DNA from: Diplonema japonicum
Lineage: Eukaryota > Protista > Euglenozoa: Diplonemea
NCBI GenBank assembly: GCA_964019335.1
Contig: OZ025723.1
Span: forward strand, 1-64,000
Length of the DNA stretch: 64,000 bases
Reading direction: 5' to 3'
This document shows positions 49 through 7,670 of the stretch, piece after piece. Numbering within the stretch: the first letter of the stretch is position 1; every line of letters starts with the position of its first letter. The notes beneath the pieces were generated by a model. That model was not told the origin of the DNA and did not search any database. It worked only from the letters and a program-made list of their open reading frames with translations. The position numbers and the translations under genes are program-made.

Positions 49-57
49 AAAAAAAAA

Positions 58-1337
58 TGGGGGGGCAGAGAGGGAGGGGCACTACCTTCTCTCGGGCGTG
101 CTGTCTCTCCCTCTGCCTTTTTTTCCTCCAAAGAGGGTCTGTTTTTCACCTCCGTGGAGGGTCCCTCTGGAGAGGGCTCTATAAAAGAAAAAGGGGGGGA
201 CAAATGGGGGGGAGGAACACTACCCTCTCTTGGGAGTGCCACCTCTTCCCCTCTCTCTCTGTTTTCCTCCGAAGAGTGTCTGTTTTTTACCTCCGTGGAG
301 GGTTCCTCTGGAGAGGGCTCTAAAAATGAAAAAGGGGGGGACAAATGGGGGGGAGGAGCACCACCCTCTCTTGGGAGTGCCACCTCTTCCCCTTTCTCTC
401 TATTTTCCTCCGAAGAGGGTCTGTTTTCCTCTGAAGAGGGTTCTAAAAAAAAAAAGGGGGCGGGTGGGGCACTATCCTCTCTCGGGAGTGCCACCCCCCC
501 TTGCCCACAAAAAAGGGGATCTAAAAAAGGGGGTTCATCTGTTAACCCAGGGGATGGGTCTTCCTGGGGTGTGCAGGTGAGCTTGGGGCCTACCGCACAC
601 AGGGTGATCAACACCCTGACACCAGTGGACATCCCAGACGGGATGTGGTGTGTCCACTGGTGTCTCGCTTCACCTTCCAACAGTGCCCATGAGAAGGGGG
701 GCACCAGGTATCTCGCCACCCTGTCCCCCCTCCTCATGACCATTGTGGTCTCGGCTCCGTACGAGAGGACTAGGACAATCGGTCCCAGCCTCACGTCATC
801 CTTGTGGGTGGCAATCCCACAACCAGACTTGTACTTGTTGACAAGTACCTGGTTGGGGACCACCTTGAGCCCTGCGGCGGCGGCCACCTCCCTCACCCAC
901 CCCTCCACCCCCCCTGGGATCCCCGTGGTGGGGCGCACCTTGGCGTTCGTCCCCTCCCACCGGTACCTGTATTGGAGGGTCTCCCTCCCTGAGTTCCCAG
1001 ACAGGGCCTCCCACTTTCCTGAAAGCAGGGCTTTTGGGAAGGCAGGGGCCGGGCCCATCCTCAACCCAGGAGGGTGTTCACCATACACCAGTACCCACCC
1101 CTTTTTTTCTCCCTCTTTTCTTCCCTCTTCAACAATAGCAGGGTCGGCTGCAGGGGTCGTGGTCGCGGCAGTCGTGGCTGCGGCAGGGGCGGCTGTGGCG
1201 GTCTCAGTTGTGGCGATCAGGGCGGCAGGGTCGGCTGTGGCGTTCAGGGCGGCTGGGGCGGCCGTGGCTGTAGCAGCGGCGGTCAAAACCGCGGTCTCTG
1301 CTAGTGATTTTTTTATTCAAGGTGGTGGGGATAACAT
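58..1337 (-). mobile_element. Degenerate mobile-element ORF encoding an AlkB-family 2OG-Fe(II) dioxygenase domain plus C-terminal repeats
   Basis: Manual translation of the minus strand. ATG at 1337, TGA at codon 7, then open to the window start, with an in-frame Met at 1058. It reads GRETLQYRYRW...PNQVLVNKYKSGCGIATHKDDVRLGPIVLVLSYGAETTMVM...VPPFSWALLEGEARHQWTHHIP...RVLITLCAV. HxD at 798-806, distal His at ~642-656. Confidence 0.75.
70..500 (-). repeat. ~141-nt (47-codon) tandem repeat, about 3 copies, in the C-terminal part of the AlkB ORF
   Basis: GAGAGGGCTCTA...GGGGGGGACAAATGGGG at 170 and 311 (period 141). Minus-strand unit is roughly EPSPEEPSTEVKNRHSSEENRERGEEVALPREGSVPPPHLSPPFSF. Confidence 0.85.
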
Positions 1338-1601: not shown

Positions 1602-1703
1602 TTCATTGCACGCTTAACACCACCTAGTGTTGCAATCAAAGCCCCATTTATTTTATTATTTTTTTTTTCTAAAGGGGGGTGGGGGGATCTAGGGGGTGGG
1701 GGT

Positions 1704-2047
1704 GGGGATTCATACTGCCCAACCAGATAGTCTGGTTGGGTCGGCCCTGGCATCATGTGCAGCCTGGTGGCCTGTCGGGGTTCCTTCTCCCTGTGGTTTG
1801 CACGGTCACCTCCTCTTGCATTCCGTCTTGGATCCATTTTTTATTTTTTTTATTTTTTTTTAAAGTGTGTGTTGGGGGAGGGGATCCTTTCGGTAAGCGG
1901 CAGGCAGGCCGACAGGCAAAACAACCCCCCCAGACGACGGCAACAACAGACAACGGACGCAGCGGCAAACCCAGGCAGAGGCAGCAGGCACCAGCAGAAC
2001 ACAAACGACCAATAAAGTACAGAAACTGTAGCTTTAGAATCATTGGT
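1704..2047 (-). mobile_element. SL-headed retroposed unit, copy 2 (SL, ~150 nt, A-tract, ~130 nt with hairpin)
   Basis: Tandem homolog of 2048-2395. Starts with the SL and ends at GAATCCCC. Hairpin CCCAACCAGA-TAG-TCTGGTTGGG at ~1718-1740. Confidence 0.75.
2010..2047 (-). other. Spliced-leader exon copy (38 of 39 nt)
   Basis: Reverse complement is ACCAATGATTCTAAAGCTACAGTTTCTGTACTTTATTG. It carries the conserved euglenozoan SL 3' half CAGTTTCTGTACTTTATTG and a diplonemid-type 5' half, with one CpG>TpG change versus the other copy. Confidence 0.92.
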
Positions 2048-2395: not shown

Positions 2396-2418
2396 GTGGG
2401 TTTGCAGGTTTGCGGGTT

Positions 2419-2875
2419 GACAAGGGCCAACAAGGCAGAGAGAGGACACAATGGTGGGAATCTGGACACAGCTGTGGTGGCTTCTGAAAGGCAAGGGAGC
2501 AACCCTCACACTGCAGTACATCCCAAGTCACTGTGGTATTGCAGGGAATGAAGTGGCTGAGAGGCTGGCAGCGGCAGGTGTGAAGGAACAACAGAGGCAG
2601 CCAGTGAGCCTTGGATCAGTGAAAAACAAGCTCTGGAAATGTGCGAAAGACAGGATTGATGCAGAGCTGGACAAGCAGACAGCCTACCAGAAGCTGACAA
2701 AGGGCAAGGAACCCCCAAAGACAAACAGCTTGGGCAGGAAAGCCGAAGTCTGCATCAATCGACTGAAGACAGGACACCACCTGCTGCTGAAGGACTACCA
2801 TGAGGGTCCGAAGCAAAAGCCATGTCAGCTGTGTGGCACGAAGTGCTGCACCCTGAACCACCTGGTGATGAGCTG

Positions 2876-2878: not shown

Positions 2879-2914
<36 letters not shown>

Positions 2915-3724
2915 GGTTTGCAGGTTTGCAGGTTTGCAGGGACTTGAGAAAATAAATAAAAAGGGGGACTTGAGAATGTTTTTTTTTTTTTTTCTTCACA
3001 AGATAAACCTTAAGAGAAGATAAAAATATTCCAAAACAGACAATCAAGTTCCAACCTGGGAGGAAGGCATGGGTTTCTCTTTTTCTTTATGGGAGGGAGA
3101 GGGGAAGAAGAAGAGGCAACTCCAATTTAAATGATAAAAATTCAAAAATAAAAATTACAAAAAAGTCTTAAAAATAAAAAGTTGTGACACAACAAGTCCA
3201 CCGATGAAAAATGAAACCCAAGAGGAAGGAGTGGGTCTCTTCTTTTCTTTTTTTTTTTTGGGGGGGGGAAGGGAAGGGAAGGAGAAGAAGAGGTAAATTC
3301 TAAAACATACTAGGGAGGAATGAGTGGGGCAGGGGGTAAAATTTAGGAGGGGGAAAGAGGGAGAATCAGAATTTCAAAAAAAAAAAAAAAAAAAAAAAAG
3401 AAAAAGAAAAAATAAAAATAAAAAAAAACAAAAAAGAAAAACAAAAAAAAATCTAAGTGGTTCTATCTAGCCTGGCTGTTGTAGCACCTGTTCCCTATTC
3501 TTTATTTTTCCCTTTTTTTTCAGAAAAAAAAAAACAAATGTTTCACATCTTCCTATGGTGGGGGGGGGGGGGGGGGGGCAGAACTGGGAGCCAAAGGCCT
3601 TAGGCCAGAGGCACTCCTCGAAAAACCACAGCAGACCACAGACCTCTTCAGTTCAATTGAAGAGATGATCACACAGGACCAGCAGTAGAAGTAAATAGAA
3701 TAGTAAAGAAAAAAAAAAAGAGAA

Positions 3725-4434: not shown

Positions 4435-4935
4435 CCTGCACAAGAACTGTCTACTTGATTACAGGGGGGTGCACCACAGCCGAGTTGTAGCTTCTTCTGC
4501 ATTCTGCATTGTTTCCTTAATCACTGTGGCTGGGATGTAGCTTCTTCTGCATTCCACATCATGCCCTTAATCACTGCAGCCAGGTTGTAACTTCTTGCAT
4601 TCCATGTCATTTCCTTAACCACCACAGCCAGGTTGTAGCTTCTTCTGCATTCTGCATCGTGTCCTTAATCACCATGACCAAGTTGTAGCTTTTTGTGTTC
4701 CATGTCATTTCCTTAATCACGATGGCTGGACGGCTGGGTTGTAGCTTCTTCTGCATTCTGTGTTGTGTCCTTAATGTGTGTGGTATTCAGCTCAACCCCA
4801 GCCAGGGCACCCCAGGTAACTAAGATTCTGTGCTTGTGTGGTTTGCTCAGTGATGACAGATGAGGAGGTCAACAGTGAACAACACATCTGATGTTTTTCT
4901 TATATTTTCATGTTATCCCCACCACCTGAAAAAGA
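4435..4935 (+). repeat. Repeat family A copy with an internal ~50-nt x6 minisatellite and the first codons of the AlkB ORF
   Basis: GTTGTAGCTTCTTCTGCATT...CCTTAATCAC units at 4484-4775. Ends TTCTTATATTTTC-ATGTTATCCCCACCACCTGAA (ATG at 4910), matching the reverse complement of 1320-1350. Confidence 0.85.
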
Positions 4936-5781: not shown

Positions 5782-6340
5782 AAGTTTTTTTCTGAACCTA
5801 TTTAATTTTTAAACCTAATAAAGAAAGTGTAAATCTCCTAATCAAAACTTTTTAGTCCAGTGTTGCCAAAATGGGTTGAAAATTAAAGTACCCGGCTGGT
5901 TACTTAATGCAGCATAGACAGAAAATTTGCAGTGTTGGGGTGGGCCAGACCCCTCAGACCACCAGTCTGGCCCACTACAAAGTGTCCATTAAAGAAAAGC
6001 AAGCCAGGATAGACTTGTGTACCCTTTTTTCGCTCCTCTTCACTTTCACCCACCCAGGCCCCACCCACCCCTACCCCTACCCAAGGCCAGGGAGGGAGAA
6101 AAAGACACACATGTCACACTTCCATCCCTCACCCATGCCTTCACTTTGATCAGGTCCTTGACCTTTCCCACTGGGGCCCTTATCCTTGCATTGCACCTCT
6201 CCAAGAACTCATGTAGTGTCACCTTGGTAGCACTGGCTCCCACCACAATGCCCACTACCCCTTCCTTCCCTGGTGTCGGGTGGTGTCTGCACCCCTGGGT
6301 CTGCAACTTGACCACCCTCCATGCCATTTCCAGAGTCCCC

Positions 6341-6527
6341 TAATGCAGATGCTCAGGGTGATGAATTGGCAGCAAACTGCATGAGCACAGAATCTTGGTT
6401 ACCCCAGGTTGCTATGGCTGGGGTTAAGCTGCACACTGCACACATTAAGAACACAACACAGAACACAGAAGAAGCTACAACTCAGCTGCAGTGCCCCCCT
6501 GTATCAAGTTAACAGTTCTTGTGCAGG
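6341..6527 (-). repeat. Repeat family A copy, CpG-depleted
   Basis: Aligns to 1422-1601 with the CpGs replaced by TG or CA. Confidence 0.85.
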
Positions 6528-7524
6528 CACCACCAACACGACGAACAGGCATTTCCTCCATCCATTTGGCTGGTCATCACCTGTAGCACCCTGAGTGGAA
6601 GAACAAATTGCAGATGCTCAGGGTGAGTAAACTACTTAGGGCACCTATTTCTAGGGGGATTTTTGCTCCTCTTAAATGGTGAAAGAATAAATTCAAATGT
6701 GTATATCCTGAAGTGAGTTATAATATAAATTTTAATTTTTTGGATGAAAATTGATTCCTTGAAGAAAAAAAAATTCAATTAGGTTACCACAGTTGGGTGA
6801 CCTATTCCTAGGAGGCTCAATATCACCCTCCAAAAAAAAAGAAAAAAAAAAGAGAAAAAAAACATGAACAGAAAACAAAAAGAAAGGAAATAGTGTGAGA
6901 ATTGAGATAATTAATGGGATGAACAGGACAAATGAGAAAAGAAAAAGAAAAGGGAAAAAAAAAGAGAACAAGTATAAGAATATAAATATGGATAAGAAGA
7001 GCACCATGAAGAGAAGAAAGAGGAAGAAAAAAAAAGTTTGTGAGCACCTTATCTAATCCCATTTACCCAAACAACCCAACTCATTTACCCCCAGAAAGAA
7101 GAAAAGGAAAAAGAGAGAACAAGTGTGAAATAAGAAGAGCACCATGAAGAGAAAAAATAAAAATACTTTCTACCCTCCTGCATGTGTTGAGCTGCACACT
7201 GCACACATTAAGGACACGACATGGAATATTGTGCTGTCAGTGTTGTGGTGATATAGTCACCACTTTCAACCTTGATGATGCAAAGAGGAAAAAAAAAGGG
7301 GGGGGGGGGGAAACTAGTTTGACACTCCATTTGTTTGTGTGCACAAGCAGAATTTTACCTAATAAAATAGCTCATTACGCTGCCATCAACTAGTTTTTAG
7401 TCTTGACAATAATATTGTTAAAACAAAAAAAAAGTAAGGAATTCCCTGTTCTGCCAAGTTCTGGTTCTGCCATTCTGCCAAGTTCCGACTTTCAGTTTGG
7501 CAGAAGGGAATGGAACAACCCAAT

Positions 7525-7670
7525 CCTGCACAAGCAGAATCTTGGTTACCCAGGACGCCCTGGCTGGGGTTGAGCTGAACACCACACACATTAAGGACAC
7601 AACACGGAATGCAGAAGAAGCTACAACTCGGCTGTGGTGTACCCCCTGTAATCAAGTAGTCTTGTGCAGG
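7525..7670 (-). repeat. Repeat family A short copy bounded by 10-bp inverted repeats
   Basis: Begins CCTGCACAAG (7525-7534) and ends CTTGTGCAGG (7661-7670). Confidence 0.8.

Follow-up and report, generated by a model that had tools for sequence, protein, structure and literature searches.

In this study, we analysed the first 64 kb of contig C76 of Diplonema japonicum (OZ025723.1, positions 1 to 64,000; referred to below as the window) and found that its minus strand between positions 52 and 2046 is almost certainly a dead copy of a chromosome-end-specific non-long-terminal-repeat (non-LTR) retrotransposon of the R2/CRE kind, which has a restriction-like endonuclease (RLE) and whose intact members are 9-10 kb long. 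In the intact members, an AlkB-type 2-oxoglutarate (2OG)-Fe(II) dioxygenase, an OTU domain, a reverse transcriptase (RT) and the RLE are encoded in one frame. Taking this identity together with a mechanism in which the AlkB domain would clean the element's own RNA, we put the probability of the whole explanation at about 0.5.

The AlkB frame and the element that carries it

Minus-strand translation from position 1337 yields MLSPPP and a TGA, after which a frame of 438 aa (3-1316) stays open until it runs off the contig start. The frame was absent from the list of open reading frames (ORFs) because the TGA follows MLSPPP and because the frame runs off the contig. The initial annotation had recognized an AlkB-like domain in it, and a profile search bore this out: Pfam PF13532 (2OG-FeII_Oxy_2) matched residues 107-227 (window 636-998) with an E-value of 8.8e-13 and 49.3 bits against a cut-off of 31.2. 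The whole AlkB domain covers 597-1097 (minus), with the RxSxTxR motif at 597-617. It is preceded by an Ala/Thr-rich linker (1120-1298, minus), which holds a 27-bp tandem repeat at 1209-1268, and followed by 47-aa in-frame repeats (72-427, minus; 141-bp period, 2.5 copies, 88% matches), both as annotated. Among solved sequences, human ALKBH8 was nearest with its AlkB domain (3thp, E 7.8e-8), and Schizosaccharomyces pombe Ofd2 came next. The window copy retains the iron triad (H171 at 804-806, D173 at 798-800 and H223 at 648-650), and the RxSxTxR motif with the 2OG-binding arginines is not intact, reading RVLITLC where intact copies read RVSITLR. The frame also runs opposite to the neighbouring long ORFs, as had been claimed for the host gene cluster: between 8541 and 54995 the window has 18 long plus-strand ORFs, with only three overlapping minus-strand ORFs, reading away from the chromosome end, whereas the AlkB frame points toward the contig end. 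The plus-strand run from about 8.5 kb to 55 kb looks like the first polycistronic gene cluster.

Searching the genome (62.5 Mb, 132 contigs) with the 438-aa frame gave at least 118 matches, several of them in open frames of 2,700-3,005 aa. In the intact copies on contigs C9 (L023:1356-9956, minus) and C31, a single frame of about 2,800 aa matched 2OG-FeII_Oxy_2 (E 4e-13; 50.6-52.7 bits for the C9 copy against PF13532), OTU (PF02338, E 6e-12; 46.7-49.5 bits against a cut-off of 23.3, with the motifs DGNCMFHAL and NGNHYEY) and RVT_1 (E 3e-16). The order along the protein is leader, Ala/Thr linker, AlkB, 47-aa repeats, basic/zinc-finger region, OTU, RT, CCHC plus RLE, and a long C-terminal part. 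The nearest solved chains to the RT were R2 retrotransposon proteins (9nl2, E 7.8e-8). The 281 aa after the RT contain a C..C...H....C motif and an RPAD...D.V.V...K pattern, and an AlphaFold model of this CCHC-RLE region built with 19 relatives (pLDDT 92.8) had significant fold matches to R2 proteins only (R2Tg 9dou, E 3.5e-6; 9nl3, 9nl2 and 8iby). In the alignment of the 19 relatives, H106, H118, E139, D169 and K199 are invariant and C90, D101 and D153 nearly so. By sequence alone, no endonuclease was named by phmmer against the PDB or by Pfam and NCBIfam, so that the fold search alone identified it, and no Exo_endo_phos match indicating an APE endonuclease was found in any ORF piece at E up to 5. 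The last ~690 aa after the endonuclease (L023 1359-3416, minus) are the least conserved part, with 26% identity between families, and matched no Pfam or NCBIfam family. Because the RT and the RLE match R2 proteins and the APE endonuclease is absent, the family belongs with the non-LTR retrotransposons that use an RLE. The proposal of the initial annotation that a diplonemid retroelement carries its own AlkB is therefore upheld by the intact copies, in which the frame continues into OTU, RVT_1 and an R2-type endonuclease.

The best named relative was 'SLACS 132 kDa protein [Diplonema papillatum]', with 39% identity over the RT-RLE part. The D. papillatum protein P0189 (KAJ9442719.1, 2,635 aa) is collinear with the element, with AlkB at 290-380, OTU at 1047-1128 and RT at 1510-1736.

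All copies examined start with the same 37-nt sequence, CCAACGATTCTAAAGCTACAGTTTCTGTACTTTATTG, in which the euglenozoan spliced-leader (SL) core is present; in two runs guessed to be RNA, this SL was covered hundreds of times deeper than the element body. At its 3' end, the C9 copy has an untranslated region (UTR) of ~700 nt, A7 and then ~620 bp of (CCCGCAAA)n up to the contig end. On contig C24, the junction between two units of a second family, family B (the window copy and the C9 and C31 copies being family A), is A9 with the SL of the following unit immediately after it, and no 8-mers lie between the units. Given the SL at the 5' end and the A run at the 3' end, the units are DNA copies of trans-spliced, polyadenylated mRNA.

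The window copy itself is dead: it carries a 328-bp insertion, it is truncated after ~1.5 kb and capped by the terminal repeat, and a CpG change has removed a 2OG-binding arginine. It is a fragment without functional weight. Positions 52-1317 (minus) were assigned by blastn to the 5' part of the family-A AlkB-OTU-RT-RLE retrotransposon (96-98% identity to other copies), cut at its 3' end; 52-1300 corresponds to positions 424-1530 of the intact C9 element at 96% identity, with 97-98% to closer copies. The frame runs straight into the terminal 8-mer array, and everything from the basic region onward is gone, so that OTU and RT are not present. On the other side, the alignment with closer copies breaks at 1317/1646, where an unrelated dispersed repeat of 328 bp (1318-1645) has been inserted between the leader and the AlkB frame; it is flanked by a duplication of ~11 A-rich bases (window versus L005/L002, 11-bp overlap). 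The leader follows at 1646-2046 (minus), with the SL at 2010-2046, the 5'-UTR and the ATG at 1835-1837 (MDPRRN...). The insertion holds the 'ATG..MLSPPP TGA' that had been taken for the start of the element with a TGA mutation. Its position inside the insertion rules this out, and the family's protein begins with MDPRRN, from window 1837 (minus). The sequence of the insertion also occurs at window 4441-4933, 6341-6626 and 7526-7659. Hence the frame is multi-copy as had been annotated, although the recurrence cited in evidence, at ~4435-4935, is that of the foreign insertion and not of the element. The dispersed repeat thus lies at four places in the first 8 kb; it has an internal 50/98-bp tandem part (tandem repeat 4477-4720).

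The mutations of the window copy were scored against 11 natural copies (L002-L012) over 1,266 bp. There were 27 private substitutions, 26 of them transitions, and 23 of the 27 were CpG>TpG/CpA changes; the CpG count has fallen from 67 to 45. Three of the four CpG transitions that had been read from the sequence are real private changes, namely G117R at 968, in the RETLQYGY motif, and S236L at 610 and R240C at 599, both in the 2OG-binding motif RVSITLR. The fourth, NEY>NKY, is not, since NKY is native to every family-A copy; the private E>K change at 866 is GLEVV>GLKVV. Over the 12 copies compared, ~54 of 74 private changes were CpG>TpG/CpA. The genome has five loci for cytosine-5 methyltransferases (PF00145), and deamination of methylated CpG is likely to lie behind the decay of the copies.

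Conservation and possible role of the AlkB domain

Between families A and B, AlkB is the best conserved of the domains compared, with 69% aa identity and a dN/dS of 0.27, ahead of RT (52%, 0.28), RLE (38%, 0.45), OTU (35%, 0.55) and the C-terminal part (26%, 0.67). The iron triad, both arginines and the motif RxTxQ(Y/F/W)G(Y/F) are kept in family A, in family B and in three D. papillatum proteins, and they are invariant in an alignment of 51 sequences. The dS between the families climbs along the element, from 0.24 in the leader through 0.91 in AlkB to ~1.5 in the RT, and the leader (C9 frame residues 62-170) is 86% identical at the aa level, compared with 26-69% for the rest of the protein; 5' modules may have been exchanged between the families more recently.

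The model of the C9 AlkB domain (pLDDT 90.7) has a double-stranded beta-helix that superposes on solved AlkB homologues. Its fold matches were ALKBH6 (7vjs, E 7.8e-12), ALKBH8, NMAD-1, ALKBH2, Ofd2, ALKBH5 and ALKBH3, as well as Escherichia coli AlkB, and the nearest viral models were giant-virus oxygenases and the AlkB domains of RNA-virus polyproteins. In a search of 1.84 billion representative proteins, the top match had an E-value of 3.9e-16, with identities of 36-40%, and most matches were stand-alone proteins of 170-200 aa. The long matches came from D. papillatum; their annotations are ALKBH8-type tRNA methyltransferase, hypothetical protein or, for members of their clusters, 'SLACS'. 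The host has ~10 ALKBH genes, all internal, and the eight that were fetched are at most 32% identical to the element AlkB (best-aligned 26-32%). A recent capture of AlkB from a host paralogue was therefore rejected, these eight genes being no closer than small AlkB-like proteins from metagenomes (31-40%). As judged from sequence, AlkB is an old possession of the element lineage rather than a recent capture, because the D. papillatum proteins share it, making it common to two diplonemid genera, and because the host ALKBH genes are distant. Being fused to the RT, common to two genera and the most conserved part, it also seems to be needed by the element.

1-Methyladenine (1mA) and 3-methylcytosine (3mC) block reverse transcriptases, and AlkB treatment is used in tRNA sequencing for that reason. 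We consider a mechanism, given slightly less than an even chance, in which AlkB cleans the element's own RNA of ~10 kb. The RLE, to judge from the placement of the copies, would nick the terminal array in its G-rich strand, and the RT would copy the mRNA from its 3' end by target-primed reverse transcription, leaving the new copy with the SL on its inner side and the tail on its outer side. AlkB, made in cis with the RT, would oxidatively remove 1mA, 3mC and possibly N6-methyladenosine (m6A) from the element RNA and so let full-length cDNA be made, while the OTU domain may act in polyprotein cleavage and/or ubiquitin removal. Action on the element RNA is suggested by three precedents: viral AlkB domains repair 1mA and 3mC in RNA (PMC2553587), the replicases of the Flexiviridae have AlkB followed by OTU (PMC544882), and the AlkB of an orchid Ty3/Gypsy element acts as an m6A RNA demethylase (PMC9289625).

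Several points weigh against this explanation. AlkB activity, its substrate and the expression of the element remain predictions; transcription is hinted at solely by contigs of low depth, from runs that were guessed to be RNA, and the SL-to-internal joints in the read contigs, which depend on 21-22 nt of SL, are unreliable. The likeness of the modelled fold to ALKBH6/8 does not settle the substrate, the DNA-acting ALKBH2/3 scoring almost as well. The high conservation of AlkB may come in part from the exchange of 5' modules between the families. Nicking of the terminal array by the RLE is deduced from placement only, and since the SL in some cases borders on a truncated element body without an intervening 8-mer, simple insertion into the array is insufficient alone.

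AlkB might instead act on DNA, either on 3mC and 1mA in single-stranded cDNA or telomeric intermediates, or on 3mC left as a side product by cytosine-5 DNA methyltransferases on heavily methylated subtelomeric repeats. We regard this as unlikely. The strong CpG decay of the copies and the five methyltransferase loci speak for it, as do the fold matches of the AlkB model to ALKBH2/3 structures (E ~1e-9) and the finding that DNA methyltransferases introduce 3mC, which is repaired by ALKB2 (PMC7343188). However, the closest relatives in sequence and fold are ALKBH8, ALKBH6 and small AlkB-like proteins rather than ALKBH2, the AlkB domains known from selfish RNA-based replicators act on RNA (PMC2553587; PMC9289625), and AlkB enzymes leave 5-methylcytosine, so that the silencing mark itself cannot be undone.

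Still less probable, in our judgement, is that the domain is not a nucleic-acid demethylase but a protein hydroxylase, a chromatin-directed enzyme (as proposed for Ofd2-like proteins) or a structural binding module. S. pombe Ofd2 (5yl6) is among the matches in both sequence and fold, ALKBH6, the top fold match, has a poorly defined function, and the domain is a minimal core of ~170 aa. Nevertheless, all three iron ligands and the two 2OG-binding arginines are conserved between families and between genera, the RxTxQ(Y/F/W)G(Y/F) motif common with nucleic-acid AlkBs is kept as well, and the domain has a dN/dS of 0.27.

Placement at the chromosome ends

The element family appears to make up most chromosome ends of the genome. 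Matches near contig starts are on the minus strand and those near contig ends on the plus strand, so that they always point outward. On the 16 contigs of known length, which the distance statistics cover, all matches but one (C24:40229) lie within ~12 kb of a contig end or inside the terminal tandem array of C24. This array (C24:1-40000; L022, L026) consists of head-to-tail family-B copies with a period of 10,659 bp, 99.97% identical to one another and with a frame of 3,005 aa; they are 59% identical to family A in the AlkB part, and the contig begins inside a copy. The C9 and C31 copies are 99.67% identical over 8,966 bp, reflecting either recent copying or homogenization between ends.

The window begins with a terminal 8-mer array, (GGGTTTGC)6 at 1-48 by TRF, which reads (GCAAACCC)n on the sense (minus) strand of the element. 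The same array is found at other contig ends with mirrored polarity, the plus strand reading (GGGTTTGC)n on the left and (GCAAACCC)n on the right. Further arrays are seen at L023 (C9) 1-618, at L024 (C31) 1-430 and at the right ends of L002, L007, L012 and L025; the two strands of the repeat are an A/C-rich (CCCGCAAA)n and (TTTGCGGG)n. The mirrored reading at left and right ends means that the strand ending 3' at the terminus is the A/C-rich one, which is the opposite of canonical telomeres and, to our knowledge, of every telomere known. Canonical TTAGGG telomeres were rejected for these ends, no TTAGGG array being present anywhere in the genome. A TERT-like gene (Telomerase_RBD plus a weak RVT_1) lies at C41:533974. 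Most contig ends viewed stop in the same repeat phase, starting with GGGTTTGC or ending with GCAAACCC (C1:1, C4:1, C76:1, C31:1, L002, L007, L012 and L025; C9 is without one G), which may reflect either a defined natural 5' end or trimming by the assembler. We found no paper in the literature on the 8-mer in any rotation. Among JGI metagenome contigs, 28 loci with the 8-mer were obtained, none encoding the element; most of the arrays are internal and unrelated and are uninformative on array polarity.

At the 3' end, copies border on (CCCGCAAA)n, which frequently flanks their 5' end too; in many cases the 5' junction is with a truncated element or some other sequence. The SL can be preceded by a handful of 8-mers, in many cases mutated to CCTGCAAA or CCCACAAA, by the A-tail of the copy before it or by the 3'-cut body of an older one. 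Older copies are cut at the 3' side, where either the terminal repeat or the SL of a newer copy joins on directly (window 52, L025 (C97) ~8256, L010:3132, L007:1127, L012:1079 and L017:2813). These chains resemble a history in which ends were lost, capped and extended anew, the mirror of the 5'-truncated arrays of Drosophila. CpG>TpG/CpA change would also explain the decayed 8-mers CCTGCAAA and CCCACAAA (internal 8-mers in L015, window 2396-2420).

That the copies spread mainly by subtelomeric recombination or break-induced replication, as a recombining subtelomeric gene family of retroelement origin, seems to us improbable. Such a family would account for the near-restriction to chromosome ends and for the C24 tandem array with its 10,659-bp period; the 99.7% identity between chromosomes fits gene conversion as well as recent transposition, and many copies are 3'-truncated, unlike the usual 5' truncation of LINEs. 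On the other hand, each unit begins precisely with a full SL and terminates in an A run (including A9 directly before the SL, and A35), both being marks of mature-mRNA copying, and several copies have kept frames of 2,800-3,000 aa open. A host ALKBH gene or pseudogene in duplicated subtelomeric DNA, to which one could be led by the window copy alone with its missing RT and its frame cut by the contig end, and whose single-copy form the initial annotation had named as the outcome that would count against it, is refuted by the multi-copy placement at ends, by intact copies in which AlkB, OTU, RT and RLE share one frame, and by host ALKBH genes that are separate, internal and at most 32% identical.

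Other element pieces lie further inside the window. A second copy, of which only the first ~345 nt are left (2050-2394, minus; SL at 2358-2394), is joined directly to the SL of the next copy. Immediately upstream of its SL are about three degenerate 8-mers (CCCGCAAA CCTGCAAA CCCACA; 2396-2420, minus). A third copy is represented by its 3' end (2879-3564, minus), with the 3'-UTR at 2939-3564 (C9 positions 636-1328), (TGCAAACC)3 at 2915-2940 and A35 at 2879-2913; it has 8-mers before its A35 tail, and transcripts can therefore run into the array. An isolated 223-bp piece of the C-terminal coding region (6119-6341, minus) is 94.6% identical to C9 1969-2191. The plus strand of 2451-2878 carries a fragment of a different retroelement, with an RNase H end and a C..C..H....C motif and with 8-mers on both flanks; its Pfam matches were weak only (RNase_H, E 0.008; zf-RVT, E 0.7).

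Comparison with known systems

Accessory enzymes are rare in non-LTR retrotransposons. We found no paper describing AlkB in such an element, the sole retrotransposon precedent found being the orchid LTR element, although proteins with the AlkB-OTU-RT layout are already in public databases under automatic names. In its boldest form, our proposal is that the chromosome ends are built of SL-capped AlkB-OTU-RT-RLE elements lying 3'-outward, with the A/C-rich (CCCGCAAA)n as the 3' strand, and that the element depends on AlkB to strip a 10-kb RNA of methyl groups that block the RT or are imposed by the host; we consider this doubtful. If it is true, long RNA-templated replicators would in general need RNA demethylation, and plant RNA viruses, the orchid LTR element and a LINE-like family would each have met that need independently. 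Since 1mA and 3mC stop reverse transcriptases, the element lends itself to studying, in a natural setting, whether retrotransposition is limited by RNA methylation and whether elements take countermeasures.

In the replicases of the Flexiviridae and Closteroviridae, an AlkB domain likewise precedes an OTU protease within one polyprotein, here too that of a replicator with an RNA template (PMC544882; PMC2553587), and the viral AlkB domains resemble the modelled fold of the element domain. In the element, however, AlkB and OTU are ~650 aa apart and the polymerase is an RT rather than an RNA-dependent RNA polymerase. Common descent was not detected, and the likeness is one of function, not of membership. 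The orchid Ty3/Gypsy element (PMC9289625) is also a retrotransposon with a fixed AlkB-type 2OG dioxygenase, for which m6A RNA demethylation has been demonstrated. It differs in being an LTR element whose AlkB is a separate extra ORF, ALKBH5-like and recently acquired, whereas the AlkB of the diplonemid element is fused into a non-LTR RT polyprotein, is old (two genera) and is nearest to ALKBH6/8 and small AlkB-like proteins.

With CRE/SLACS/CZAR and R2, the element has in common one long ORF, an RT followed by CCHC and a PD-(D/E)xK-type endonuclease with an R2-matching fold, and what may be a narrow target, here a simple repeat array; no APE endonuclease was found in it. It differs from them in having AlkB and OTU ahead of the RT and ~700 aa of unassigned C-terminus after the RLE, in lying at terminal 8-mer arrays and not in SL RNA or rRNA genes, and in its own 5' end, which is a copied spliced leader. 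Insertion inside SL RNA genes of the CRE/SLACS type does not describe these copies, which lie at contig ends and have the SL as a complete 5' leader, not as a split target. Affiliation with the CRE/SLACS clade proper is at most suggested by the SLACS annotation of the best match (39% identity).

SART1/TRAS1 of Bombyx, GilM/GilT of Giardia and HeT-A/TART of Drosophila are telomere-specific retrotransposons. Like them, the element is found almost only at chromosome ends, in head-to-tail chains and at or in the terminal repeat. It differs from all of them in its extra AlkB and OTU domains, and from SART/TRAS, which have an APE endonuclease, in having an RLE instead. The arrays of Drosophila and Giardia are mirrored by those of the element, whose 3' end faces the chromosome end and whose older copies are 3'- rather than 5'-truncated. 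The orientation of the element at the chromosome ends is opposite to that of the known telomeric retrotransposon arrays.

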